DNA of 64,000 nucleotides from the sequence record NC_061441.1. One strand, given 5' to 3'. Within the stretch, counting starts at the first letter, position 1. Every line of letters starts with the position of its first letter. Below the pieces are notes generated by a model. The model searched no databases. It worked only from the letters and a program-made list of their open reading frames with translations, and was not told the DNA's origin. The position numbers and the translations under genes were made by a program. This document shows positions 1,693-63,847 of the stretch, piece by piece.

Positions 1693-2436
1693 TTAGAAGA
1701 ACTGACTGTCACAACCATCAAGGCTACAGCGTAACGCTTGATATGCGGTGGCACGTTCTTCCGTTAGATTGATATACTTATCGTCAATATTGTACTTCAC
1801 TCTAACAGGCACGTCGTACCCATCGAGCAGGCCGTGTCGCTTATAAGCATTCAGGCGTAGCACAGGTGAACTGACCTTAGCATGTTCCATGATGTTCAGG
1901 TCAATCTTGTCGGCGTAAATGAATGGACGCTCTCGCTTACACATGATGTAATCAATCTCATGCAAATTAAAGAGTGTGAAATTCATATAGCCAATAATGA
2001 ACTCCGCAATCAGCCTGAATGAATCAAACATATCAGGCCTAAATTGTTGTGTGAGAATATGATCAACGTACGGTCTGATCTCGGTACGCATCTCATACCA
2101 ACTCTCACAGAACAATGCAGGGAAGTCTTCAGGGTGATGGGCCATAAGGCCCAACACTTCTTTCTCTGTATCTGCAAAGGAACTTAAAATGTCTGAGGCA
2201 TCGTCAGACGCCTCGACACCACGACCGGTCGAAATAAAACGACGCTCAATGTCTCTCAACCAAGATTCCGAAGCAGATAGGTATTGGAGCAGTGTTTCTC
2301 TCGCGGCAGCCGAGAACTCATGCCTGTCGGAGTCAAGAACCTCACCGAGCATGAAGGCTTTCGCTTTGTAGAAATCAATATAGCGCTCGGCGGTAAATCG
2401 TCGAAACCCTATGTTATTCCTCAAATAGCCCATCAT
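1693..2436 (-). CDS. Hypothetical soluble, mostly alpha-helical protein (247 aa)
   Basis: Uninterrupted ORF translationally coupled to the upstream gene (4-nt ATGA-type overlap); no recognisable family. Confidence 0.75.
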   Translation of the reverse strand: MMGYLRNNIGFRRFTAERYIDFYKAKAFMLGEVLDSDRHEFSAAARETLLQYLSASESWLRDIERRFISTGRGVEASDDASDILSSFADTEKEVLGLMAHHPEDFPALFCESWYEMRTEIRPYVDHILTQQFRPDMFDSFRLIAEFIIGYMNFTLFNLHEIDYIMCKRERPFIYADKIDLNIMEHAKVSSPVLRLNAYKRHGLLDGYDVPVRVKYNIDDKYINLTEERATAYQALRCSLDGCDSQFF

Positions 2437-2948
2437 CGCAATGCCCTCAGATCATTCAACTCCGTGTTGCCTTGAGCGTTTGGAGTTGTGTAGAGAGAAC
2501 TGGAGATGCTCTGCAATCTCAGCCCGAGCTTCTCAAGTTCTTGCTGGTTGCCACCTAACTTCTCAAGGACTTCACGCATAAGTTCAACGGAGCCTTGATG
2601 GTCGCGGGATTGCTGGGAAATGATTCGTTCGAAGCGCTGCATAGCACGGAGAACAGAGTTCAATCCCTCTTTCATATCCAAATTATCGACTGGTGCAGAA
2701 TCAGAAATTGACTGAATCATTCGCATCATCTGCGCCAAGTCGGCTTGCAATTCATCGCTATCTGTATTGATAGGACGACCTGCTTCTAGCTCTGCGTTAC
2801 GCGCTTTCAATTGCTCCAGTTCTTCAAGCTGAGGCAGTAGCTTCAACCAAACGTATGCACCACCTGCGATTAGCAGAACTACAGAGAAGACAGTCGCGTA
2901 GTTGGACGCAAGCAACTTGTCTAAAATTTCCGCCCACATTATATTCAA
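2433..2948 (-). CDS. Single-pass membrane protein with long coiled coil (holin/i-spanin-like architecture, 171 aa)
   Basis: N-terminal hydrophobic helix (YATVFSVVLLIAGGAYVWLKLL) followed by heptad-rich helical region; 4-nt overlaps with both neighbours. Confidence 0.65.
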   Translation of the reverse strand: MNIMWAEILDKLLASNYATVFSVVLLIAGGAYVWLKLLPQLEELEQLKARNAELEAGRPINTDSDELQADLAQMMRMIQSISDSAPVDNLDMKEGLNSVLRAMQRFERIISQQSRDHQGSVELMREVLEKLGGNQQELEKLGLRLQSISSSLYTTPNAQGNTELNDLRALR

Positions 2949-3229
2949 CCCTTACAGGTGTTATCGTTCAGATCAACAATGACCCTCTCGGCACCTGGTT
3001 CGTTTACGTCAGTGGTTTTGTACGTGTGCGCCATCCTAGGCTTGAACTCTAAGCAGCTCTGACCGTAACGTCCATCGACAACACAGATGGCGGACAGGCA
3101 ACTCACATCTTCCTTGAGAATTAAATTTTCAGGAGACTGGTTGACACTCCTAACGGCAGTGATTACAAACCCAACCACAGCGATAGCAATGACAACCACA
3201 ATGGCAATCCTAATTCGCTTGGCTTGCAT
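2945..3229 (-). CDS. Small membrane-anchored protein with four Cys in the soluble domain (94 aa)
   Basis: Basic N-terminus (MQAKRIR) plus one TM helix (IAIVVVIAIAVVGFVITAV); Cys in SCLSAIC, QSCLE and NTCKG; RBS GAGG upstream. Confidence 0.7.
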   Translation of the reverse strand: MQAKRIRIAIVVVIAIAVVGFVITAVRSVNQSPENLILKEDVSCLSAICVVDGRYGQSCLEFKPRMAHTYKTTDVNEPGAERVIVDLNDNTCKG

Positions 3230-3264
3230 TTTTGGTTCTACCTCACAGTCCTTTTATCTGACTG

Positions 3265-3272
3265 AAATTAGC
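3265..3272 (-). promoter_or_regulatory. Putative phage late-promoter motif GCTAATTT
   Basis: Intergenic copy 36 nt upstream of the 3229 start; same octamer recurs upstream of several structural operons. Confidence 0.5.
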
Positions 3273-3294
3273 GAACCACACGCCCTGCGAGGAT

Positions 3295-4323
3295 TTATTC
3301 CTCCAATACGCCACTAATCTCCGTAAACATATTTTTGTACACTAAACTCCCACCAAGTTTGTCCAATCTGTCCACCAGCACATATAGCTTCGGTGTCGTG
3401 CGCATGTTAGCCCACGTCTTCTCGTTCGGGTCGAGTCCGCCTACAGTAGGCACAATCACCAGACTGAGGTTTTTATTGGCTCGAACGAAACCGATATCCA
3501 GATGCGTCCTGTTTATAGTCCTGATAAGCCTATTGATTGCGTCCAAACCAACAGGCTTGTTGAATTCCGTATCATTGACAGTGTTGACCAAACTAATGAG
3601 AATTCCTTTGTCTTTCGTGTCGATATCAAACAGGTCTGCTTTCAGATCTGCCACAGTTGATGCCGAGAAGTATGACACGTCGTGGTTAAGATCTTTCAGG
3701 CAGGAGCCTAAGGCACGCGCCGATTCGATGTGAGCCACGTTGTCATCCCGAAGAATATACACAGGCGCATCTGGCTGGTGGGTGCGTTTCGATATCAAAT
3801 CAATAAGCTCGCAAGAGGGTCGACCAACAGTAGCCAGCCCCTTGTTAGCAATATAGAATTTGTCACGATACACGTCGTATATGTTAGGAGGCATATACTT
3901 CATGTAGTCATCGTCCAGACTAAGAATCATTCGAGGCTTAGTTAATTGAACGACCAATTGCATACTACGGAGCGAAGCCTTGTACTCTGTATCGGAGAGC
4001 ACACGGCTAATCGGCAGATACTGCACAACCACAAAGCGTTCGTCGATTGAGTCAACGACAGACCGTATGAGTGTGCTGCCTAATGTAGGTCCAGCAGAGA
4101 ACTGGGTAACGATCATCAAACTACCTGCAACCAAGCTACGTGTCTTAGCTACCGTCTGACCGCTACCCAGCTCGACTACGGAGGACTCCCACGTTATGGC
4201 TGGATCGTCTCGTCCGCTATCGGCATGTACATAAGCTGCGCCACACCAGAGACAGGCTCCAAGAATGTAAGCAGCAATACGTTGTCCGGATCGGCCTCTG
4301 CGGGATTGACCGTTTCGGGCCAT
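3295..4323 (-). CDS. Secreted periplasmic-binding-protein-like (ABC substrate-binding/sensor-domain-like) protein (342 aa)
   Basis: Strong RBS (GAGAGGAG, 7 nt from ATG). Signal peptide (basic n-region, AAYILGACLWCGAAYVHA|D). Alternating beta/alpha pattern with KPRMILSLDDD resembling the KPDxIIAxDD motif of type I PBP sensor domains. Confidence 0.55.
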   Translation of the reverse strand: MARNGQSRRGRSGQRIAAYILGACLWCGAAYVHADSGRDDPAITWESSVVELGSGQTVAKTRSLVAGSLMIVTQFSAGPTLGSTLIRSVVDSIDERFVVVQYLPISRVLSDTEYKASLRSMQLVVQLTKPRMILSLDDDYMKYMPPNIYDVYRDKFYIANKGLATVGRPSCELIDLISKRTHQPDAPVYILRDDNVAHIESARALGSCLKDLNHDVSYFSASTVADLKADLFDIDTKDKGILISLVNTVNDTEFNKPVGLDAINRLIRTINRTHLDIGFVRANKNLSLVIVPTVGGLDPNEKTWANMRTTPKLYVLVDRLDKLGGSLVYKNMFTEISGVLEE

Positions 4324-5021
4324 AGCACTTCTCCTCTCTCGTCAGTGACGTAAGGAATGCCGGCGCCTTTACCCAATCCATGTCGTAAAGCCCAAACAGT
4401 GTCGGCATTCTCCTGCACGAACACTAACCCTTTGACTTGCACATCGGACGTTGCATTCTCCAGTACCTCAACGCGCTTCTCAAGAAGCTCGGCATCGGAT
4501 TGCAGCACACGAATAGCAGACAGGTTAGAGTTAACGCGCTGGTTCATGTTGTTGAACATGGTGAAGAACGAGTTGTTCATCGCCGTGCGAACGCCGTCCG
4601 TATAGGACTTTGGAATTAGTTCATCGTTATCAAACGTTGTTACGCCTGTACGCGCGAGAACTTTACCGGTAAGACGTCCACCACTTGCGCTGATAATCTG
4701 AGGAGCAGGCAAATCAGCCTCATCCCAGATTTGAACAGTGGTCATCACCGTATTGTAGTCGGTCTCTTCCTGCCACGTATTCTTATACGGTGCAGTAGCC
4801 GTTTTGGACTTACGACGCATGACTTTCTTATAGCCAGCGTTCGATCCATCGGCGATGATCCAGAGACCGTTCAGTGGAAATACGTGAGTAATAGGTTCGG
4901 CGAACGAAAGAATAATCGTAACGTCGGCGCCTACCTTGTACGCAATATCGTTCGACGCAGAAAGCCCTTGCTGTTGGGCAAGAGCAATCAGCGTGTCCAC
5001 GTAGTTAGTCAACTGGCTCAT
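4194..5021 (-). CDS. Fibre-associated virion protein (275 aa)
   Basis: Fibre repeat (ELIPKSYTD), short coiled coil, C-terminal 'WALRHGLG..PYVTDERG' module related to the C-terminus of 44..1669. Confidence 0.65.
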   Translation of the reverse strand: MSQLTNYVDTLIALAQQQGLSASNDIAYKVGADVTIILSFAEPITHVFPLNGLWIIADGSNAGYKKVMRRKSKTATAPYKNTWQEETDYNTVMTTVQIWDEADLPAPQIISASGGRLTGKVLARTGVTTFDNDELIPKSYTDGVRTAMNNSFFTMFNNMNQRVNSNLSAIRVLQSDAELLEKRVEVLENATSDVQVKGLVFVQENADTVWALRHGLGKGAGIPYVTDERGEVLWPETVNPAEADPDNVLLLTFLEPVSGVAQLMYMPIADETIQP

Positions 5022-5483: not shown

Positions 5484-6305
5484 TTAGTCTCCCACTGCCG
5501 TGTACCAGAAGTCCCAGCCTACAGTATTGGTGCCGCTGGACTTAATGGTAAAGCCACCTAACAAGGCGTTCTCGTTCACTGCACTAGTACCATCAAGGTT
5601 GTAGAGCGTAAACGTCTTAGCCTGGTTCGTTGCAGCATTCAAGAACGTAATCTGAATGCTAAGGCAGCGGTTGATGAACGGGCTGTTGAAGATAACGTGA
5701 ATGGTATCAGTAGTTGATTTGTTCACGATGCGACCCATGTTCTGGGTAAAGCCCGTGTTCATATCTCTGTTACTACCGACCCATGCGTTTGGAATCACAG
5801 CACCTGTTACAGGGTCAAGTGCTTGCGCTGTTCGATACTCGTCGATAGCAGCATCACGCCCCGGGTTACCAGTAGGACCCGTCGCACCAGTAGGACCGAC
5901 TGCTCCAGTGTTACCAGTAGCGCCAACAGGACCAGTGTTGCCCGTAGGACCATTACGTCCTCTTGGACCACGAGGGCCTGGGCAGCCGTCTTCACCGTCA
6001 CGACCGTCACGACCGTCAGCACCAGGCAGACCGCGTAAGCCGTCTTTACCCTGCTTGCCTTCGCGCCCTGACTTGAGCTGGTCGGCAGTAGGCAAACCAA
6101 TAACGTTCGTCTGACTGCCATCAGGCCAAATGAGTGTTAACGTACCTGTTGTCGTATCGAACTGAGCACCCTGAGCACCTGGAATCTTCGCAGCTTCTTG
6201 CGGACTGATAAACGCGACCGCAGTAGAAGTCTTCTTACCTAGCACTTTACCGACGGGGTCATTACCACCGTCGATGAGTGAAGGATTAATGCGTGTTAAA
6301 GACAT
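5484..6305 (-). CDS. Collagen-like fibre protein D (24 Gly-X-Y triplets, C-terminal beta-sandwich tip domain)
   Basis: GREGKQGKD...GNPGRD repeat; N-terminal FDTTTGTLTL..GLPT domain; C-terminal 'VIFNSPF...GFTI...WDFWYTAVG' typical fibre-tip domain. Confidence 0.8.
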   Translation of the reverse strand: MSLTRINPSLIDGGNDPVGKVLGKKTSTAVAFISPQEAAKIPGAQGAQFDTTTGTLTLIWPDGSQTNVIGLPTADQLKSGREGKQGKDGLRGLPGADGRDGRDGEDGCPGPRGPRGRNGPTGNTGPVGATGNTGAVGPTGATGPTGNPGRDAAIDEYRTAQALDPVTGAVIPNAWVGSNRDMNTGFTQNMGRIVNKSTTDTIHVIFNSPFINRCLSIQITFLNAATNQAKTFTLYNLDGTSAVNENALLGGFTIKSSGTNTVGWDFWYTAVGD

Positions 6306-6315
6306 GGGTGAGCTC

Positions 6316-6519
6316 CTAACCAGTCAGTGTTGTCCAATCAGGTTGACCCGATTGCCCGGCTTCTGGGTTTTTGACTTTCGTGTTATTGATTGTCATACGA
6401 ACCCAACGGACAGTACCGTCCGCATCTTGCCACCGAACCTTCGTGCCACCGTATGCTAAATTAGCTACCCATCTGTCTCTGCTTGGGTCTTTGAATGCTA
6501 AACGTGCATATGCAGGCAT
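6316..6519 (-). CDS. Small Trp-rich fibre adaptor protein (67 aa)
   Basis: RBS TAAGGAG; three short (R/K)xxxxxxW repeats like the N-terminus of 9449..11467. Confidence 0.7.
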   Translation of the reverse strand: MPAYARLAFKDPSRDRWVANLAYGGTKVRWQDADGTVRWVRMTINNTKVKNPEAGQSGQPDWTTLTG

Positions 6520-16417: not shown

Positions 16418-16425
16418 AAATTAGC
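16418..16425 (-). promoter_or_regulatory. Putative late-promoter motif GCTAATTT
   Basis: Immediately downstream of a terminator and 27 nt upstream of the 16391 start. Confidence 0.55.
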
Positions 16426-23183: not shown

Positions 23184-23206
23184 GATTATTCTCCTCTGTT
23201 AGACAC

Positions 23207-23214
23207 AAATTAGC
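23207..23214 (-). promoter_or_regulatory. Putative late-promoter motif GCTAATTT
   Basis: Between a terminator and the PAAR start (24 nt upstream). Confidence 0.55.
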
Positions 23215-23228
23215 TTGTTAGGCCGCAG

Positions 23229-23263
23229 AAACAAAAACGGGCAGCCTCATGGCCACCCAGTTT
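23229..23263 (-). terminator. Rho-independent terminator closing the non-coding locus
   Basis: GGGTGGCC-ATGA-GGCTGCCC followed by GTTTTTGTTT on the minus strand. Confidence 0.8.
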
Positions 23264-23292
23264 CTGTGCTTGGATTTGTGTCGCTCATTCCC

Positions 23293-23451
23293 TCACACCC
23301 GAAGCGAGTGCCCGACGGCTTTAGCCGATGAGCCGGAATGAATGTCCGAGAGTGACGATACACCTGGTATCGACAGCATGTGACTCTCGGGCCATGATAG
23401 CAATAGACCAAGCATCGCTATTGCCACCAGCGACACTAAGAACAAAAGCAT
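23293..23451 (-). CDS. Unannotated small membrane peptide, 52 aa (MLLFLVSLVAIAMLGLLLSWPESH...HSLRV)
   Basis: GAGGAG RBS 6 nt upstream of ATG; first 19 residues form one TM helix; below the ORF-track length cutoff. Confidence 0.5.
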   Translation of the reverse strand: MLLFLVSLVAIAMLGLLLSWPESHMLSIPGVSSLSDIHSGSSAKAVGHSLRV

Positions 23452-23510
23452 GTTTCGCTCCTCGTGTCTTACTTTAAATAACTACGTTTGATCAACTGGT
23501 ACTTTGTTCT

Positions 23511-23538
23511 GCTCGTCGCCCAACATCACTTGAGTATC
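23511..23538. repeat. 28-nt direct repeat, copy 1 (GCTCGTCGCCCAACATCACTTGAGTATC)
   Basis: Identical to 23900..23927; flanked by complementary GTTCT/AGAAC. Confidence 0.95.
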
Positions 23539-23899
23539 AGAACGTTTCTCTGTCTTTACCGCCTACGTTGCGGTTATACCGCGCACGACACTCACATATC
23601 AAGGGCACTCGGCGGAAAGGGTAAGTTCCGAATGTCCTAACAACATGAGTGAAGCGAAGGAGGTCCCGTATCGGTGATCTGCAGGGGTTCACGCACTTTT
23701 AACATTCGCTTCTTTGTGCATTAGATCTTTCGTGGACTCGAATGCCCTGCTAATCATTCCACTAAGATATTTCACACCCTATTGTGAACGGGTCAAGCTA
23801 TGGCAGCACGTCAGCACGGCAGGCAGCGGACACACTCCATTAAGCATTGTTAAGGGCAATGCTCAACAGGCTGTGAACAGCTTGGTCGGAATAGGTTTC

Positions 23900-23927
23900 G
23901 CTCGTCGCCCAACATCACTTGAGTATC
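23900..23927. repeat. 28-nt direct repeat, copy 2
   Basis: Identical to 23511..23538; flanked by complementary TAGGT/ACCTA. Confidence 0.95.
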
Positions 23928-24497
23928 TCGACCTAAACTTTTACTCTCCACACGACTACAAGGAAGAATCGCGTTTCTGTGACCTGCGGATGTTTATCAC
24001 TCTCAGACTCTTGAGCCACTATCTGGAAGCTAACACGCTGAGTCGTCCGCTGGATGACGTGTTAGCTCTCCTCTCCTCGTCGTGCGAAGGCCAGAGTGGT
24101 AGCTGATGGATTGTCATGAAGGAATCCCTGGGGGTCATCGCTTCCCAATGCACACAGGGTGAAAGCCTATGCACATCAGGCAGCGTCTGCTGCGGTACTG
24201 CTGTCCCCTTGAGAGTGGCCATAGCGTTGAGTTTGCGCTTCGCCAGTCTACGTGCCTGGAAGGTATCTGCCGTGCCTATGTCTGCATTCAGCATGGTTCC
24301 TTTGCTGGGCCTTTTGGGCGTCAGCGACAGAGCAGATATTCATCACGTGGGTGCCGGGGTTGTCCTCACGATTACAGAGCGAACTCAAACCGGCTGGAGG
24401 CCCATATGCTCAGGAATGCACATACGAGTTTACCAGAAGAACGGCCCCGCTATGGTAGCGTTCTTCCGAGACATACTGATATTACTATCTGCAATTT

Positions 24498-24507
24498 TTA
24501 TTTACAG
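24498..24507 (-). promoter_or_regulatory. Putative promoter element CTGTAAATAA
   Basis: AT-rich inverted-repeat context (ATCTGTAA..TTGCAGAT); identical decamer upstream of the ligase gene. Confidence 0.35.
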
Positions 24508-24514
24508 ATTTTTC

Positions 24515-24577
24515 TTAACCTTCGCCCCAACCACAAGAAGCAGGTTTACCGTCACCGTAACCGATTTTAAACAGCAT
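24515..24577 (-). CDS. Unannotated 20-aa peptide (MLFKIGYGDGKPASCGWGEG)
   Basis: AAGGA RBS overlapping the stop of the upstream gene; codon choice (GGT, AAA, GCT, TCT) like the highly expressed genes. Confidence 0.45.
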   Translation of the reverse strand: MLFKIGYGDGKPASCGWGEG

Positions 24578-24586
24578 AGTTAGTCC

Positions 24587-41824: not shown

Positions 41825-41832
41825 AAATTAGC
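41825..41832 (-). promoter_or_regulatory. Putative late-promoter motif GCTAATTT
   Basis: Intergenic, 43 nt upstream of the sheath start. Confidence 0.55.
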
Positions 41833-54694: not shown

Positions 54695-56605
54695 CTAGCT
54701 GGCGATTGGGTCTTTGTTGACAGGATAATCTTCCACCATGTCGATTACGCGATTGAACAGCTTAGGCGCCATATCTTTCACATGTTCGGCATAGTCAAAG
54801 AGGTTTTGTTTACGCGCACGGTTCACACGGACCTGACGCACTTCATCAGGGCTATTGGTGATATCGTACAGCGTATAGACCACGATGTTATCAGAGGCGT
54901 TGTGCGTACTAACACGGACGATAACCCAATCACGATTGAGTTTGGCATCTGCTCTGAATCGCAGCACGTCACCTTCCTCCGCTTCTTCTGCGCGAGCATT
55001 AGGAGTGGATTTGTTGGCGGCAGCAATCTTCTTCGCAGTCTCTTTAGCTTCGGCCTCTGCGGCAGCAACGTCAGAGTCTTGGTCTTCCTCTGCGTCATTC
55101 TCATCTACCGCGTCAGTGGCGTCGGCTTCTGGGTCATCATCGGAGGCTTCGTCGTCTTCTGCTCCAGAATCTTCTGAGTCAGCTCCTTCGTCGTCAGCGC
55201 CTTCATCATCCACGGATTCGGAATCATCGTCGGCAGTGTCGTCCTCATTTGATTCATCATCAACATCTGGATCGCTATCGTCAACGTCTTCTTCTGCATC
55301 TGGGTCTTCCTCTTCCTCTTCACCGTCAGTAGAGTCTTCTTCCTCTTCTTCTGGTGCAGGCTTAGCAGGCTTGGCGCCTTTCTTAGGACGCACTTTAGGC
55401 GGCGGAGTATCTTCTTCGTCGTCTTCTGGTTCATCAATATCAGAAAGGTCGAGCGCAGGTTCTTCGTGGTCTTCTGAATCATCACCACCAAACAGCGAAC
55501 CTACAGAATCTTCGATGTTGAACATGTCGCCTGCAAACGGGCTGCGAGATAACACGTCTTCGAGTTTCTGCTCATCGAAGTCCAGATCGATTTCGACTTC
55601 TTCAATCGCATCGTCCAGTTCTTCGTGCTCGATGACACGCACACGCTTACCACGTTTGTCGATACCATCTTCGTAGACAGTACGCACTTCTGCTTTAGGC
55701 GCTTCAATCTCACCAGACTTAACCTTACTACGCAGGTCTTTCATCTCGGCGGCACGGGCCTGTTGCTTCTTACGTGTTTCCTTCGCAAGCTCTTTGCGTT
55801 GCTGCTTCTGCTCAAGAATCTTCGCATTGTTGGCGAGGCGTACAGCTTCTTCCTCTTCCAGTTGCGAGCGCTTACGATGACGGCGCACCTGCTTGCGATA
55901 TGCTTTCAGCGTATCAATGTTCACTTCACCTTTCGGCCAATCATTGAATGGGAGAATGTTGGTGTCGTGAACAAGCAGATCGTATTGCGCGTCATCAATC
56001 TTAACGAACAGGCCTTCGGTGTTAATGACCACACCGCCTTTACCTTGCCGCAAGAAGCGTACACCGATCATGTCGTTTTTGTACAGCTTGAGCATACCCT
56101 TAGAAGTCTTAATAGGATATTCCATGCTCGGAACCATACGCCACTGATAGTTATCGAAGTTAACACCGTACACAGCCTCAGACTTCACAGACTTAGGCGA
56201 GAAGCGGGCAGCATCGAACTGCACACGATTGATTTGACGCTGCATGGTTTTAGCACCAGCAGTCTTCGTGCGCGTTTCACGTTGAACAACATCGGGGACC
56301 TTGCGCAGTTTGGAGCTACGCTCAATCAGGAACAGGCCTGTTGTTTTATCGAGAGGGAAGTCAACGTGAGGCATGTCGGCAAAGATTAATGTGTAGCGAC
56401 CGCCATTGCGCAGCGGGAGAATGCCGAAAGTATCTCCATCACGAATCATACGCTTATGAGTTCGTTGGGATACTTCCTTGCCGCGTGAACCTTTATACTT
56501 CATCCACGCGTACTTCGTTACTGCATCTTCATGAGATGCGGACACGGAAAGTATCATGTTCTTGTCTCTATGTTGTCTGTCACTCATTGAAATTAGCTTA
56601 CGCAA
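54695..56605 (-). CDS. Putative internal head protein with two shared N-terminal domains, coiled coil and acidic tract (likely start 56557)
   Basis: MILSVSA start; two copies of the shared domain; about 200-aa D/E-rich region; C-terminal SH3-like domain. Confidence 0.7.
   Translation of the reverse strand: MRKLISMSDRQHRDKNMILSVSASHEDAVTKYAWMKYKGSRGKEVSQRTHKRMIRDGDTFGILPLRNGGRYTLIFADMPHVDFPLDKTTGLFLIERSSKLRKVPDVVQRETRTKTAGAKTMQRQINRVQFDAARFSPKSVKSEAVYGVNFDNYQWRMVPSMEYPIKTSKGMLKLYKNDMIGVRFLRQGKGGVVINTEGLFVKIDDAQYDLLVHDTNILPFNDWPKGEVNIDTLKAYRKQVRRHRKRSQLEEEEAVRLANNAKILEQKQQRKELAKETRKKQQARAAEMKDLRSKVKSGEIEAPKAEVRTVYEDGIDKRGKRVRVIEHEELDDAIEEVEIDLDFDEQKLEDVLSRSPFAGDMFNIEDSVGSLFGGDDSEDHEEPALDLSDIDEPEDDEEDTPPPKVRPKKGAKPAKPAPEEEEEDSTDGEEEEEDPDAEEDVDDSDPDVDDESNEDDTADDDSESVDDEGADDEGADSEDSGAEDDEASDDDPEADATDAVDENDAEEDQDSDVAAAEAEAKETAKKIAAANKSTPNARAEEAEEGDVLRFRADAKLNRDWVIVRVSTHNASDNIVVYTLYDITNSPDEVRQVRVNRARKQNLFDYAEHVKDMAPKLFNRVIDMVEDYPVNKDPIAS
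56590..56597 (-). promoter_or_regulatory. Putative late-promoter motif GCTAATTT
   Basis: Just downstream of a hairpin and 33 nt upstream of ATG 56557. Confidence 0.5.
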
Positions 56606-63061: not shown

Positions 63062-63847
63062 TCACTCCATTACCAGATAGGTTACAGTGAGTTTCGGTTT
63101 CGACGGCGAGGTGCCGATATTCTTCATACGCCACGAGATTGTAGGCGTGTTGTCCTTATTGGACAAGAAGCTGTATCGGCGCAGCTTACGAATGACAGGA
63201 TTGCCTTCGCTATCCACATCAGAGAACACGCCGTCATCTTCAAGAAAATTAGCAGTGGAGCGGAATAAATACGGATTTCTGTCGTCGCGTTGCGCTGTAG
63301 GGAATGCGGAGAGTTCCACATCAAACGCATTGAGTTGAACAGAAAGCAGCATCACGGTGCGGTTCATCTGCAAATCAAAATCAATCTGCTGACCAGGAGT
63401 AATGTACGAAGGTGATTCGTACTCCACAGTCTTACGCACACCAGCACTCTCATTGCCGCTCAAGTCGGCCCAGAACATTGTACCATTAGCGCCAGACACG
63501 AGGGTCATCCCTGCGTATTCAGGCTCAGGCACTTGTTTACTTGGGTCGAGGCCTACAACAGTCAGACCTGTCTCATCCACAGCAGTAACGAAAGGCGACT
63601 CGAACTTATACTCCGAGCCACCAAATTTCGCTTCTTCCCATGTCACGTTGTCTGCACCAAGCTGATACATCTTCTTGGTCTCGGTCACGTAACACAACAT
63701 CCCAGGCTTTTTATTACCTACGGACATTGTGTCACGCAACGCGAGTGTAGCAAGACAACGCATACCCCCACGAAGATAAACATCCTCGAGGAGGTATGGG
63801 AGAGCTGCGGATGCTGGTAACAGGAACGAAGTCATCATTACCGGCAT
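63062..63847 (-). CDS. Virion structural/fibre-associated protein (261 aa)
   Basis: N-terminal 'LRGG...LRD...GMLCYVTETKKMYQL' module common in phage fibre proteins; RBS GGAG. Confidence 0.65.
   Translation of the reverse strand: MPVMMTSFLLPASAALPYLLEDVYLRGGMRCLATLALRDTMSVGNKKPGMLCYVTETKKMYQLGADNVTWEEAKFGGSEYKFESPFVTAVDETGLTVVGLDPSKQVPEPEYAGMTLVSGANGTMFWADLSGNESAGVRKTVEYESPSYITPGQQIDFDLQMNRTVMLLSVQLNAFDVELSAFPTAQRDDRNPYLFRSTANFLEDDGVFSDVDSEGNPVIRKLRRYSFLSNKDNTPTISWRMKNIGTSPSKPKLTVTYLVME

Follow-up and report, generated by a model that had tools for sequence, protein, structure and literature searches.

A conserved four-gene module with a predicted secreted Venus-flytrap protein in the tail-fibre region of jumbo phages

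What could be the role of four adjacent genes, lodged among the tail-fibre genes of a jumbo phage, whose products together would span the periplasm, the inner membrane and the cytoplasm of the host? The window that we analysed, a 64,000-nucleotide stretch of sequence record NC_061441.1, comes from Erwinia phage pEa_SNUABM_16/18 (Alexandravirus, a "hairy" jumbo myovirus). An initial annotation of the window had described a four-gene sensor module between two fibre genes, and the ORF listing of the window confirms four adjacent ORFs in the tail-fibre region, all on the minus strand and at the coordinates originally assigned. We refer to these genes as A, B, C and D. The features discussed below are as follows.

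4194..5021, minus strand: gp104, the fibre-like upstream neighbour, labelled "HNH endonuclease", with PHROG tail-protein matches
4194..4323: out-of-frame overlap of gp104 and gene A, 130 nt
3295..4323, minus strand: gene A (RefSeq gp103, extended), encoding a 342-aa precursor; based on its ORF, start codon, signal peptide, AF2 model and Foldseek matches
4222..4323, minus strand: signal-peptide-coding part of gene A, with a conserved ATG, a Shine-Dalgarno sequence and signal-peptide features
3265..3272, minus strand: promoter-like motif GCTAATTT, 36 nt upstream of gene B
2945..3229, minus strand: gene B (gp102), encoding a predicted bitopic protein of 94 aa
2433..2939, minus strand: gene C (gp101), encoding a predicted bitopic protein of 168 aa
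1693..2436, minus strand: gene D (gp100, labelled "ABC transporter"), encoding a predicted cytoplasmic protein of 247 aa
44..1669, minus strand: gp099, the downstream neighbour, fibre-like by annotation and PHROG, labelled "virion structural protein"

The four genes and their predicted products

The precursor encoded by gene A consists of a signal peptide (residues ~1–34), a variable linker modelled with low confidence (to residue ~68), and a folded domain (residues ~69–339). The signal peptide is missed by RefSeq because the gene start is placed there at 4116, which leaves 273 aa only. Several observations favour the upstream start. The ATG at 4323 follows a strong Shine-Dalgarno sequence and is kept in four genera, and in Yoloswag and SNUABM_5 there is no alternative start ahead of the conserved N-terminal strand of A. 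Nearly all distinct variants of A begin with an ATG, and downstream of the start all of them conserve a positive n-region, then a hydrophobic core, then small residues at −1 and −3; JA11-type variants have an apparent GTG start at the homologous position. Distant homologues carry their own signal peptides, which do not overlap the neighbouring gene. The signal peptide claimed in the initial annotation is thus borne out across the family, and A is predicted to be exported to the periplasm by the Sec pathway. Within the enterobacterial clade the signal peptide contains a lipobox-like LGAC; the distant members have no lipobox, while a signal peptidase I-type site is conserved.

The type I periplasmic-binding-protein pattern first noticed in A is upheld by structure prediction. 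In the AF2 model, residues 69–339 form alternating strands and helices with pLDDT mostly 84–95, and a Foldseek search of the PDB returned 24 matches at E≤1e-3, nearly all with the PBP-I/Venus-flytrap fold (PBP-I, LIVBP, LacI and receptor amino-terminal-domain types). The best matches have E-values of 1e-4 to 1e-3, a probability of 1.0 and sequence identities of 8–13%, and the TM-scores for A are modest overall (0.43–0.53), the top match being 3lft with 0.53. These best structural relatives are receptors for solutes and sensor domains, namely 3lft, 6hb0, 6hnj, LpoA, binding proteins for ribose and galactose, LacI-family sugar-binding domains, and glutamate-receptor amino-terminal domains. The predicted structure therefore supports the assignment of A as a secreted Venus-flytrap protein. 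Conserved polar residues (D193, D251, E253, N271, H274, N285 and R319) are located in loops and at the ends of strands in the model. By sequence, A has no Pfam or PDB match. Only 18 relatives were found among 1.84 billion representatives, a search that detected no bacterial homologue, and the three contigs that were read all have the phage-like gene order of the module.

The part of A that encodes the signal peptide overprints the 3′ end of gp104 in a different reading frame. Distant relatives conserve nearly the full length of the gp104 protein, and we take its C-terminus to be ancestral because the alignment with one distant homologue, encoded beside a gene that does not overlap it, is likewise almost complete. 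Analysis of sequence diversity revealed no extra constraint in the overlap. The "HNH endonuclease" label of gp104 is not sustained: the protein has no HNH Pfam match, has PHROG tail-protein matches instead, and is conserved as part of the fibre block. On the other side of the module, gp099 is homologous to Lu11 gp255, its positional counterpart in that phage.

Genes B and C are predicted to encode single-pass membrane proteins of opposite orientation. B has a K/R-rich N-terminus and a strongly hydrophobic transmembrane segment at residues 8–26 (mean Kyte-Doolittle 3.2, only 32% G/A/S/T), followed by a domain of ~65 aa predicted to be periplasmic. The four soluble-side Cys residues noted earlier are invariant in 25 distinct variants, as are a Glu and a Pro in the same ectodomain; the predicted orientation, N-in/C-out, would place the Cys residues in the periplasm. 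C has a short acidic N-tail, a transmembrane segment at about residues 17–35, an invariant Pro after this segment, a charged helical/coiled-coil domain of ~130 aa, and a conserved R..L motif at the C-terminus. The C protein of the window contains zero Cys. Summed over 27 variants, K and R residues around the transmembrane segment number 14 on the N-terminal flank versus 77 on the C-terminal flank, from which we predict an N-out/C-in orientation; the coiled coil would therefore be cytoplasmic. The positive-inside rule is the sole basis of this assignment, and a reversed orientation would make the coiled coil periplasmic. Neither B nor C contains a lipobox.

C had been described as a single-transmembrane coiled-coil protein of 171 aa. 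The architecture stands and the length does not, since the start is the ATG at 2939 (168 aa) and not the TTG at 2948: the sequences of relatives align from this Met onwards, with spacers of 1–6 nt. For the same reason, of the 4-nt overlaps that were said to couple the last three genes, the one between B and C disappears and the sole overlap in the module is the ATGA at 2433–2436, between C (168 aa) and D (247 aa). Through this overlap D is translationally coupled to C.

D, the most conserved of the four proteins, had been expected to be soluble and helical, in agreement with the confident AF2 model (pLDDT 93.3, pTM 0.90), which has five long helices and a small alpha/beta C-terminal part. Foldseek found no significant match to D in the PDB (best E=1.1), and the only other matches were four viral ones, all uncharacterised; the confidently predicted fold is thus one not seen in the PDB. 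PHROG and RefSeq tag D as "ABC transporter", and this label can be rejected: D has no Walker A motif, ABC signature, transmembrane segment, ABC Pfam or NCBIfam match, or matching fold.

B, C and D match no known family. Pfam searches of these three proteins gave no kinase, GGDEF, EAL or HAMP match, and they contain no recognisable transmitter or output domain. Likewise, A–D match no lysis, defence or signalling family. The sole PADLOC match in the module, between C and MkoA (E=0.007, 12 bits), is of the coiled-coil type and not significant.

Gene order, promoter-like motif and candidate lysis genes

A, B, C and D are contiguous and collinear in 32 of 32 loci and also in Lu11, giving 33 related loci in total, and the order holds down to ~20% identity (16–25% for A). 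The proposed co-conservation of the four genes is therefore confirmed by synteny, and with it the anatomical half of the initial reading: a secreted PBP-I-fold protein, two bitopic proteins and a cytoplasmic protein that are strictly co-conserved. The same result does not support the idea that the module was inserted into the fibre locus. Because the order is identical in all 33 loci, the module is ancient rather than recently inserted, and the arrangement is ancestral in the phage lineage. Throughout the Erwinia/Dickeya/Yersinia/NCTB/Lu11 lineage the module is found, without exception, inside the block of fibre genes, on the same strand as the structural genes and as tightly packed, and the ~8 flanking genes are likewise collinear in distant relatives. 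The phages of this lineage infect Erwinia, Dickeya, Yersinia and Pseudomonas. As judged from its sequence relatives the module is essentially phage-only, its single genome-collection match being one 7-kb MAG contig. The divergence of A tracks phage phylogeny and not host: A is 78% identical to its counterpart in a Dickeya phage versus 44% to that of Yoloswag, which is an Erwinia phage too. Outside the lineage, a C-D pair without A and B is found in the jumbo phages Vibrio pv27 and Ralstonia RsoM2USA, where no fibre homologue is detectable within 6 kb. C-D therefore has a role that needs no periplasmic receptor.

The motif GCTAATTT, which had been regarded as the module's own, is present upstream of B and is non-random (7 matches in the window versus 1.43 expected, all on the minus, coding strand), but it is distributed window-wide and is not private to the module. 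The sites are mostly intergenic, mostly ~25–45 nt upstream of start codons, and one lies ahead of a baseplate (PAAR) gene. The TAATTT core before B is kept at the same position in five genera. Together, the position of the module in the structural block and the occurrence of the motif before the PAAR gene suggest late rather than early expression. The base composition of the module (47.0% GC versus a window mean of 50.3%) falls in the lowest 0.4% of 2.5-kb windows; the dip reported earlier is real but modest in size, the values of 38% and 55% having come from tiny spot samples.

Elsewhere in the genome are genes for a 2-TM holin-like protein (gp077), a transmembrane protein (gp076), a lipoprotein (gp075) and a GH108 endolysin (gp201). 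We regard gp075–gp077 as a candidate holin/spanin cluster separate from the module, with gp076 and gp075 the candidate spanins; the Lu11 counterparts of this cluster adjoin the Lu11 endolysin. In Lu11 and HRDY3 a single fibre gene separates the module from a cluster that encodes the endolysin, a 2-TM protein like gp077 and a lipoprotein like gp075. Because this candidate cluster and the endolysin lie elsewhere, the module is not a plain spanin pair. This agrees with the lack of a lipobox in B and C, with the predicted orientation of C, opposite to that of an i-spanin, and with the absence of any embedded lipoprotein ORF: with the exception of the A signal peptide, 1693–4323 contains no coding-strand ORF with a lipobox.

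A proposed envelope relay and its alternatives

We propose, with a probability of roughly 40%, that the products of the four genes form one conserved assembly across the envelope, which relays information outside-in, from periplasm to cytoplasm. The assembly would be made alongside the late structural genes. A would be exported by Sec and fold into a two-lobed Venus-flytrap receptor in the periplasm, where the small ectodomain of B, probably stabilised by two disulfides, likely docks it. C would lie beside B in the inner membrane in the opposite orientation, extending its coiled coil of ~130 residues into the cytoplasm and holding D, which would be made in step with it through the ATGA overlap. 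Closure of A, dependent on a ligand or a condition, would then act through the B/C transmembrane pair on the C-D complex. The complex would in turn tune a decision taken late in infection, most plausibly the timing of lysis. We infer the topology of B and C, the protein-protein contacts, the direction of information and the output.

The most likely working principle would be that of the binding-protein-dependent membrane sensors LuxP/LuxQ, TorT/TorS and ChvE/VirA, without the kinase. As in those systems, a stand-alone secreted PBP-I-fold protein is encoded beside membrane partners that would reach the cytoplasm, and ligand-induced closure would be sensed by a membrane partner. However, the module has no histidine kinase, cyclase or recognisable transmitter (no HisKA/HATPase-type partner); the partners are two opposed single-pass proteins and a protein of novel fold; and the genes are phage-encoded, lie in a structural-gene block and have no sequence homology to those sensors. 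The Psp membrane-stress system (PspB/PspC/PspA) also pairs two small bitopic proteins of opposite orientation with a cytoplasmic helical protein. Psp lacks a periplasmic binding protein, though, and D has neither a significant PDB match nor any Pfam match. A bolder proposal, which we consider somewhat doubtful, is that the module represents a new class of phage sensory system, in which a secreted receptor signals through two opposed single-pass proteins to a novel-fold effector that tunes the late programme, for example lysis timing; C-D would be its old central part, to which one lineage would have added A-B as a periplasmic input. What is sensed might be a metabolite, a piece of the envelope or some indication that other phages are present.

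How do other explanations compare with this relay? The setting invites a structural one, in which C tethers D at the cytoplasmic side of the inner membrane, there to serve the neighbouring fibre proteins as a chaperone or assembly platform, and A and B anchor or position the platform via the periplasm. Residence in the fibre block throughout the lineage, a strand and tight packing in common with the structural genes, and the high conservation of D, as is often seen for assembly factors, all accord with such a morphogenetic factor, and a location in a long structural-gene block fits morphogenesis as well as a relay. It is nevertheless unlikely: Vibrio pv27 and Ralstonia RsoM2USA have C-D with no detectable fibre homologue nearby, D matches no known chaperone fold, and a secreted ligand-binding fold and a disulfide-bonded ectodomain are left unaccounted for. 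The collinearity of the flanking genes in distant relatives would also be expected if four genes of unrelated function were held together only by the rigidity of the structural block. The ATGA overlap of C and D, the persistence of the C-D pair outside the lineage and the improbable chance origin of such complementary compartments (periplasm, two opposite anchors, cytoplasm) make this very unlikely. A role in superinfection exclusion or receptor masking would follow the pattern of those exclusion proteins whose genes neighbour receptor-binding genes (T5 Llp, Cor of phi80 and N15, T4 Sp and Imm): A with B, acting in the periplasm, could block entry of a second phage, or mask or occupy the receptor. 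Both proteins are predicted to be extracytoplasmic, the module adjoins fibre genes, and the LGAC of the enterobacterial clade resembles a lipobox. However, the exclusion genes known so far tend to stand alone, to evolve fast and to occur patchily, while A–D are universal and collinear in the lineage down to ~20% identity; A diverges with phage phylogeny and not host; expression is probably late; the lipobox is missing from distant members, a signal peptidase I-type site being conserved; and PADLOC gave no significant match. We therefore consider exclusion or receptor masking quite unlikely.

A direct part in lysis, with B and C as a spanin pair, or with the module as a T4-type holin/antiholin set in which D is RIII-like and A is RI-like, has in our view a very low probability. 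The T4 lysis inhibition set comprises the holin T and the antiholins RI and RIII (PMC12162936). The module resembles it in combining small single-pass envelope proteins with a cytoplasmic partner at the distal end of fibre genes and in its proposed purpose, to time lysis according to a condition sensed in the periplasm; B and RI are of about equal size, C resembles the layout described for T (a short amphipathic N-terminus, one transmembrane segment and a long helix; PMC12162936), and an endolysin cluster is near the module in Lu11 and HRDY3. Against this, A–D show no similarity to T, RI or RIII in searches of Pfam, PHROGs, NCBIfam and PDB sequences at permissive thresholds, and no Pfam or PHROG lysis family is matched; C is predicted to be oriented opposite to T; the very hydrophobic anchor of B appears stable, unlike the SAR anchor of RI; the PBP-fold A has no T4 counterpart; and the Erwinia phage has a separate holin-like gene. 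Two-component spanins of the lambda Rz/Rz1 type likewise encode a single-pass inner-membrane coiled-coil protein, comparable to C, beside a small envelope protein, comparable to B. The module differs in having no lipoprotein partner, no embedded or overlapping lipobox ORF and a C protein of predicted opposite orientation, and the genome already has gp075–gp077 and gp201. Finally, A could be a phage-borne solute-binding protein serving a host ABC importer, with B–D as unrelated neighbours. Its best structural matches are indeed ABC-transporter solute-binding proteins (PF04392-type and ribose/galactose-type) and LacI domains (3lft, 6hnj, 6hb0, 4kq9, 5kws and 6ndi), D carries an "ABC transporter" label, and the cyanophage periplasmic phosphate-binding protein PstS (PMC1079782) is a precedent for a phage with a periplasmic binding protein. 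PstS, however, is an auxiliary metabolic gene of clear host origin whose product works with an ABC transporter of the host, whereas A, restricted to a single jumbo-phage lineage, lacks any detectable cellular homologue and is accompanied by three dedicated partners. A has neither a cognate permease nor a cognate ATPase: B and C are single-pass proteins, D has none of the hallmarks of an ABC protein, and strict four-gene co-conservation speaks against unrelated neighbours. Nutrient uptake is thus extremely improbable.

Significance of the module

To our knowledge, very few phage systems read the host envelope or surroundings, the main examples being T4 lysis inhibition, arbitrium and quorum-sensing eavesdropping. 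The module appears to be a device, not described before, that connects the host periplasm with the cytoplasm, and a stand-alone periplasmic-binding-protein fold that is kept together with its own membrane and cytoplasmic partners throughout a jumbo-phage lineage would be a concrete, testable candidate for such sensing in a lytic phage. Even if the module proves to be structural, D has a confidently predicted fold without a solved relative, and the annotation is corrected in that A is truncated in RefSeq and the labels "ABC transporter" and "HNH endonuclease" are unfounded. The overprinting of the A signal peptide on its neighbouring gene would stand in either case.

Layout, distribution and age of the A-D module

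What is the genomic setting of the A-D module? The window's first 9.5 kb is 100% identical to Erwinia phages pEa_SNUABM_16 and pEa_SNUABM_18 and corresponds to positions 62001-71500 of NC_061441.1; the whole window spans about 62001-126000 of that record. Both phages belong to Alexandravirus, have genomes of about 266 kb, and are grouped with the 'hairy' jumbo myoviruses. The module lies within a long minus-strand run of mainly structural genes and is flanked by tail-fibre-like genes, gp104-gp108 upstream and gp099 downstream. All four ORFs claimed in the initial annotation are present on the minus strand:

3295-4323, minus strand, ORF A (RefSeq gp103, extended)
2945-3229, minus strand, ORF B (gp102)
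2433-2939, minus strand, ORF C (gp101)
1693-2436, minus strand, ORF D (gp100)

The start first assigned to C, TTG 2948, is replaced here by ATG 2939, giving 168 residues, because the alignment of relatives begins at that Met and short spacers follow B. With C starting at ATG 2939, the sole 4-nt overlap is the ATGA at the C/D junction; the B/C junction, also described as overlapping, has none. The module is indeed low in GC (47.0% versus a window mean of 50.3%, within the lowest 0.4% of 2.5-kb windows), but the contrast suggested by spot counts was far too dramatic.

Profile HMMs placed A-B-C-D side by side and in unchanged order in 32 of 32 loci, and Lu11 keeps the four genes in the same arrangement. 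With Lu11 counted in, the loci represent Alexandravirus, Yoloswagvirus, Rivsvirus, Salmondvirus, Yersinia phage fHe-Yen9-02, NCTB, the Pseudomonas phages HRDY3 and Lu11, and metagenomic contigs. The B homologue is unannotated in the HRDY3 (locus L014, 6240-6506) and Lu11 (locus L039, 5157-5480) records, where profile HMMs matched open frames in the annotated gap. The fibre genes around the module are collinear in the relatives as well. Together, the shared gene order and collinear fibre surroundings argue that the module is an ancient fixture of this locus; the earlier description of it as inserted was not borne out, and a recent horizontal insertion is rejected. Vibrio phage pv27 and Ralstonia phage RsoM2USA carry C and D without A or B, in reversed order in the latter, which suggests that the more widespread core is C-D, to which one lineage has added the periplasmic A-B.

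Members of the family come almost exclusively from phages. An exhaustive search of 1.84 billion representatives returned 18 relatives of A, all of them unnamed; contigs were read for three of these and are phage-like in each case. Similarly, a word-indexed protein search, run with the single sequence and with a profile, recovered only close phage relatives and fragments, and a search of a genome collection gave one MAG contig, which is mis-binned.

Within the upstream fibre block, gp106 (5484-6305) encodes a fibre protein with collagen repeats whose match to the gp53-like C-terminal domain is weak and below threshold, and collagen-like fibre genes occupy the same position in distant relatives.

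The start of gene A and its overlap with gp104

RefSeq starts A at 4116, yielding a 273-aa product that has lost its signal peptide. Judged from start sites and signal-peptide features, the long form beginning at ATG 4323 is the real one. A strong Shine-Dalgarno sequence precedes ATG 4323 and has equivalents in relatives; in Yoloswag, SNUABM_5 and fHe-Yen9-02, the equivalent ATG and Shine-Dalgarno sequence lie 124-133 nt within the upstream gene, and Yoloswag and SNUABM_5 have no other start before the conserved N-terminal strand of the domain. In nearly all distinct variants, the ATG, a K/R-rich n-region, a hydrophobic core and a small −1 residue are retained, and JA11-type phages have a GTG start where a close relative has ATG. 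Finally, homologues at 16-25% identity (from metagenomic contigs, NCTB, HRDY3 and Lu11) have signal peptides of their own in genes that do not overlap. The long form creates the following feature:

4194-4323, 130 nt, out-of-frame gp104/A overlap, with the A signal peptide inside the ancestral gp104 C-terminal coding region

The overlap is absent in distant relatives. Over nearly its whole length gp104 aligns with its distant homologue, so in the enterobacterial clade the A signal peptide is overprinted on ancestral gp104 coding sequence, a case in which overprinting has given rise to an export signal. Compared by codon position, nucleotide diversity within the 130 nt (0.29 versus 0.32 at gp104 third positions) shows no extra constraint and speaks neither for nor against dual coding; it is the conservation of the start codon and signal peptide that supports the long form. 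An LGAC motif in the enterobacterial clade prompted us to consider A as a lipoprotein; signal peptidase I cleavage is the likelier route, since distant members lack the Cys but conserve the −3/−1 site.

The gp104 product (4194-5021) carries an 'HNH endonuclease' label in RefSeq and PHROGs that has propagated through all related records. Pfam found no HNH domain in it, its matches being to tail-protein PHROGs, and gp104 is a conserved fibre-block protein.

Predicted properties of the four proteins

Sequence and profile searches of A-D, as proteins and as alignments, against Pfam, NCBIfam, PADLOC and PDB returned nothing above noise, and the AF2 model of A was built on a 22-sequence alignment. 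Residues 1-62, comprising the signal peptide of about 34 residues and a variable linker, are modeled with low confidence, and a confidently modeled domain of alternating beta and alpha elements spans residues 69-339. Foldseek gave 24 PDB matches at E<=1e-3, nearly all of the type I periplasmic-binding-protein / Venus-flytrap fold, in agreement with the fold initially guessed for the 342-aa protein. The best is the S. pneumoniae L-Trp-binding protein 3lft (TM 0.53); others include MSMEG_1712, LacI-family sugar domains, the ribose, arabinose and galactose binding proteins, CD0873, LpoA and glutamate-receptor amino-terminal domains, all at 8-13% identity. In the model, the near-invariant polar residues, D193, D251, E253, N271, H274, N285 and R319 among them, occupy loops and the ends of strands, a placement that would suit a cleft.

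B comprises a K/R-rich N-terminus, a very hydrophobic TM segment and an ectodomain of ~65 residues in which four Cys, one Glu and one Pro are invariant among 25 distinct variants; the Cys pattern fits a disulfide-bonded periplasmic domain. C has a 16-residue N-tail nearly devoid of K/R, one TM segment, an invariant Pro and a charged helical domain, with a conserved R..L motif at the C-terminus of the protein. Across 27 variants, the N and C flanks of the TM segment contain 14 and 77 K/R residues, respectively, and the positive-inside rule consequently predicts an N-out/C-in topology with the coiled coil in the cytoplasm, opposite to the orientation of both i-spanins and T4 holin T.

D is modeled by AF2 with very high confidence (pLDDT 93.3, pTM 0.90) as five long helices and a small alpha/beta part; N7, N8, E47, E64, E160, R194 and Y198 are invariant. 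Foldseek matched D to nothing in the PDB (best E 1.1, TM <=0.24) and to only four entries in BFVD, all uncharacterised viral proteins that are probably distant orthologues. An ABC transporter assignment, suggested by a PHROG name, is unsupported, as D lacks Walker and ABC motifs as well as a fold match, and a PspA-like function is rejected because there is no structural match.

Possible function, lysis genes and promoter-like elements

We are highly confident that all four of A-D are real, are inherited together and act in the envelope and cytoplasm, and moderately confident that they form a single envelope-spanning assembly. We propose that periplasmic A would dock onto the B ectodomain, that B would pair in the membrane with C of opposite orientation, and that the cytoplasmic coiled coil of C would hold D. 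Information would most plausibly flow from outside to inside, as in LuxP/LuxQ-type systems but without a kinase. We put the probability that the module is a signal relay at about 0.4. Its likeliest output would be control of lysis timing, itself an improbable specific guess. The module passed none of the membership tests, which covered spanins, T4 lysis-inhibition proteins, ABC transporters, sensor kinases and catalogued defence systems, and literature searches on Y3, Yoloswag, Alexandra, the SNUABM phages, the JA/AD phages, PaBG and Lu11 yielded no usable virion proteomics or transcriptomics and no mention of the A-D genes. Only A, through its fold, ties the module to any described system; we rate the module as outside the known kinds of system, its proposed function being putative.

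Could A-D instead be direct lysis proteins? The GH108 endolysin gp201 (record 169776-170345) lies about 105 kb from the module, and a further cluster closes the module's minus-strand block:

NC_061441.1 44663-45739 (locus L006), gp075-gp077 cluster, at the end of the minus-strand block

Here gp077 is a 2-TM protein, gp076 an N-in single-TM protein and gp075 a lipoprotein with a classic lipobox. The cluster is about 125 kb from gp201, and the Lu11 counterparts of gp077 and gp075 directly adjoin the Lu11 endolysin, which makes gp075-gp077 likely holin and spanin genes and A-D unnecessary as basic lysis machinery. A plain spanin pair, the outcome that the initial annotation had set against its own reading, is rejected given the missing lipobox, the opposite predicted orientation and the spanin candidates elsewhere. 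In Lu11 and HRDY3 the lysis cluster lies one fibre gene downstream of D, weakly supporting a link between module and lysis.

Several other alternatives to a relay were weighed. A membrane-anchored platform for fibre assembly would suit the fibre surroundings; no fibre homologue is detectable near C-D in pv27 or RsoM2USA. Superinfection exclusion or receptor masking would suit envelope proteins, and the comparison with catalogued defence systems was negative. A nutrient-uptake auxiliary gene would account for the binding-protein fold of A, and the transporter comparison likewise failed. Finally, the four could be unrelated neighbour genes; the order conserved in every locus points the other way, as does the C-D pair found outside this lineage.

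The motif GCTAATTT upstream of B, initially described as the module's own, is genuine and not private to it. The window contains 7 copies, all on the coding strand, versus 1.43 expected:

3265-3272, minus strand, GCTAATTT copy
6458-6465, minus strand, GCTAATTT copy
16418-16425, minus strand, GCTAATTT copy
23207-23214, minus strand, GCTAATTT copy
41825-41832, minus strand, GCTAATTT copy
56590-56597, minus strand, GCTAATTT copy
63246-63253, minus strand, GCTAATTT copy

Most lie between genes, with a start codon about 25-45 nt downstream, and terminator-like hairpins precede some; the TAATTT core ahead of B is conserved in five genera. We regard GCTAATTT as a phage promoter-like element and a candidate middle or late promoter core; that copies also precede structural genes would suit a late promoter.

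A stretch of about 1.4 kb (23184-24586), between a PAAR-like gene and a 586-aa gene, lacks a convincing coding-strand ORF; RefSeq places two overlapping opposite-strand 'hypothetical' ORFs there, and neither a tRNA nor an Rfam family was found in it. Related phages have a matching stretch of preserved length (about 1.3 kb), annotated with 0-3 ORFs, and it could be a conserved non-coding element.
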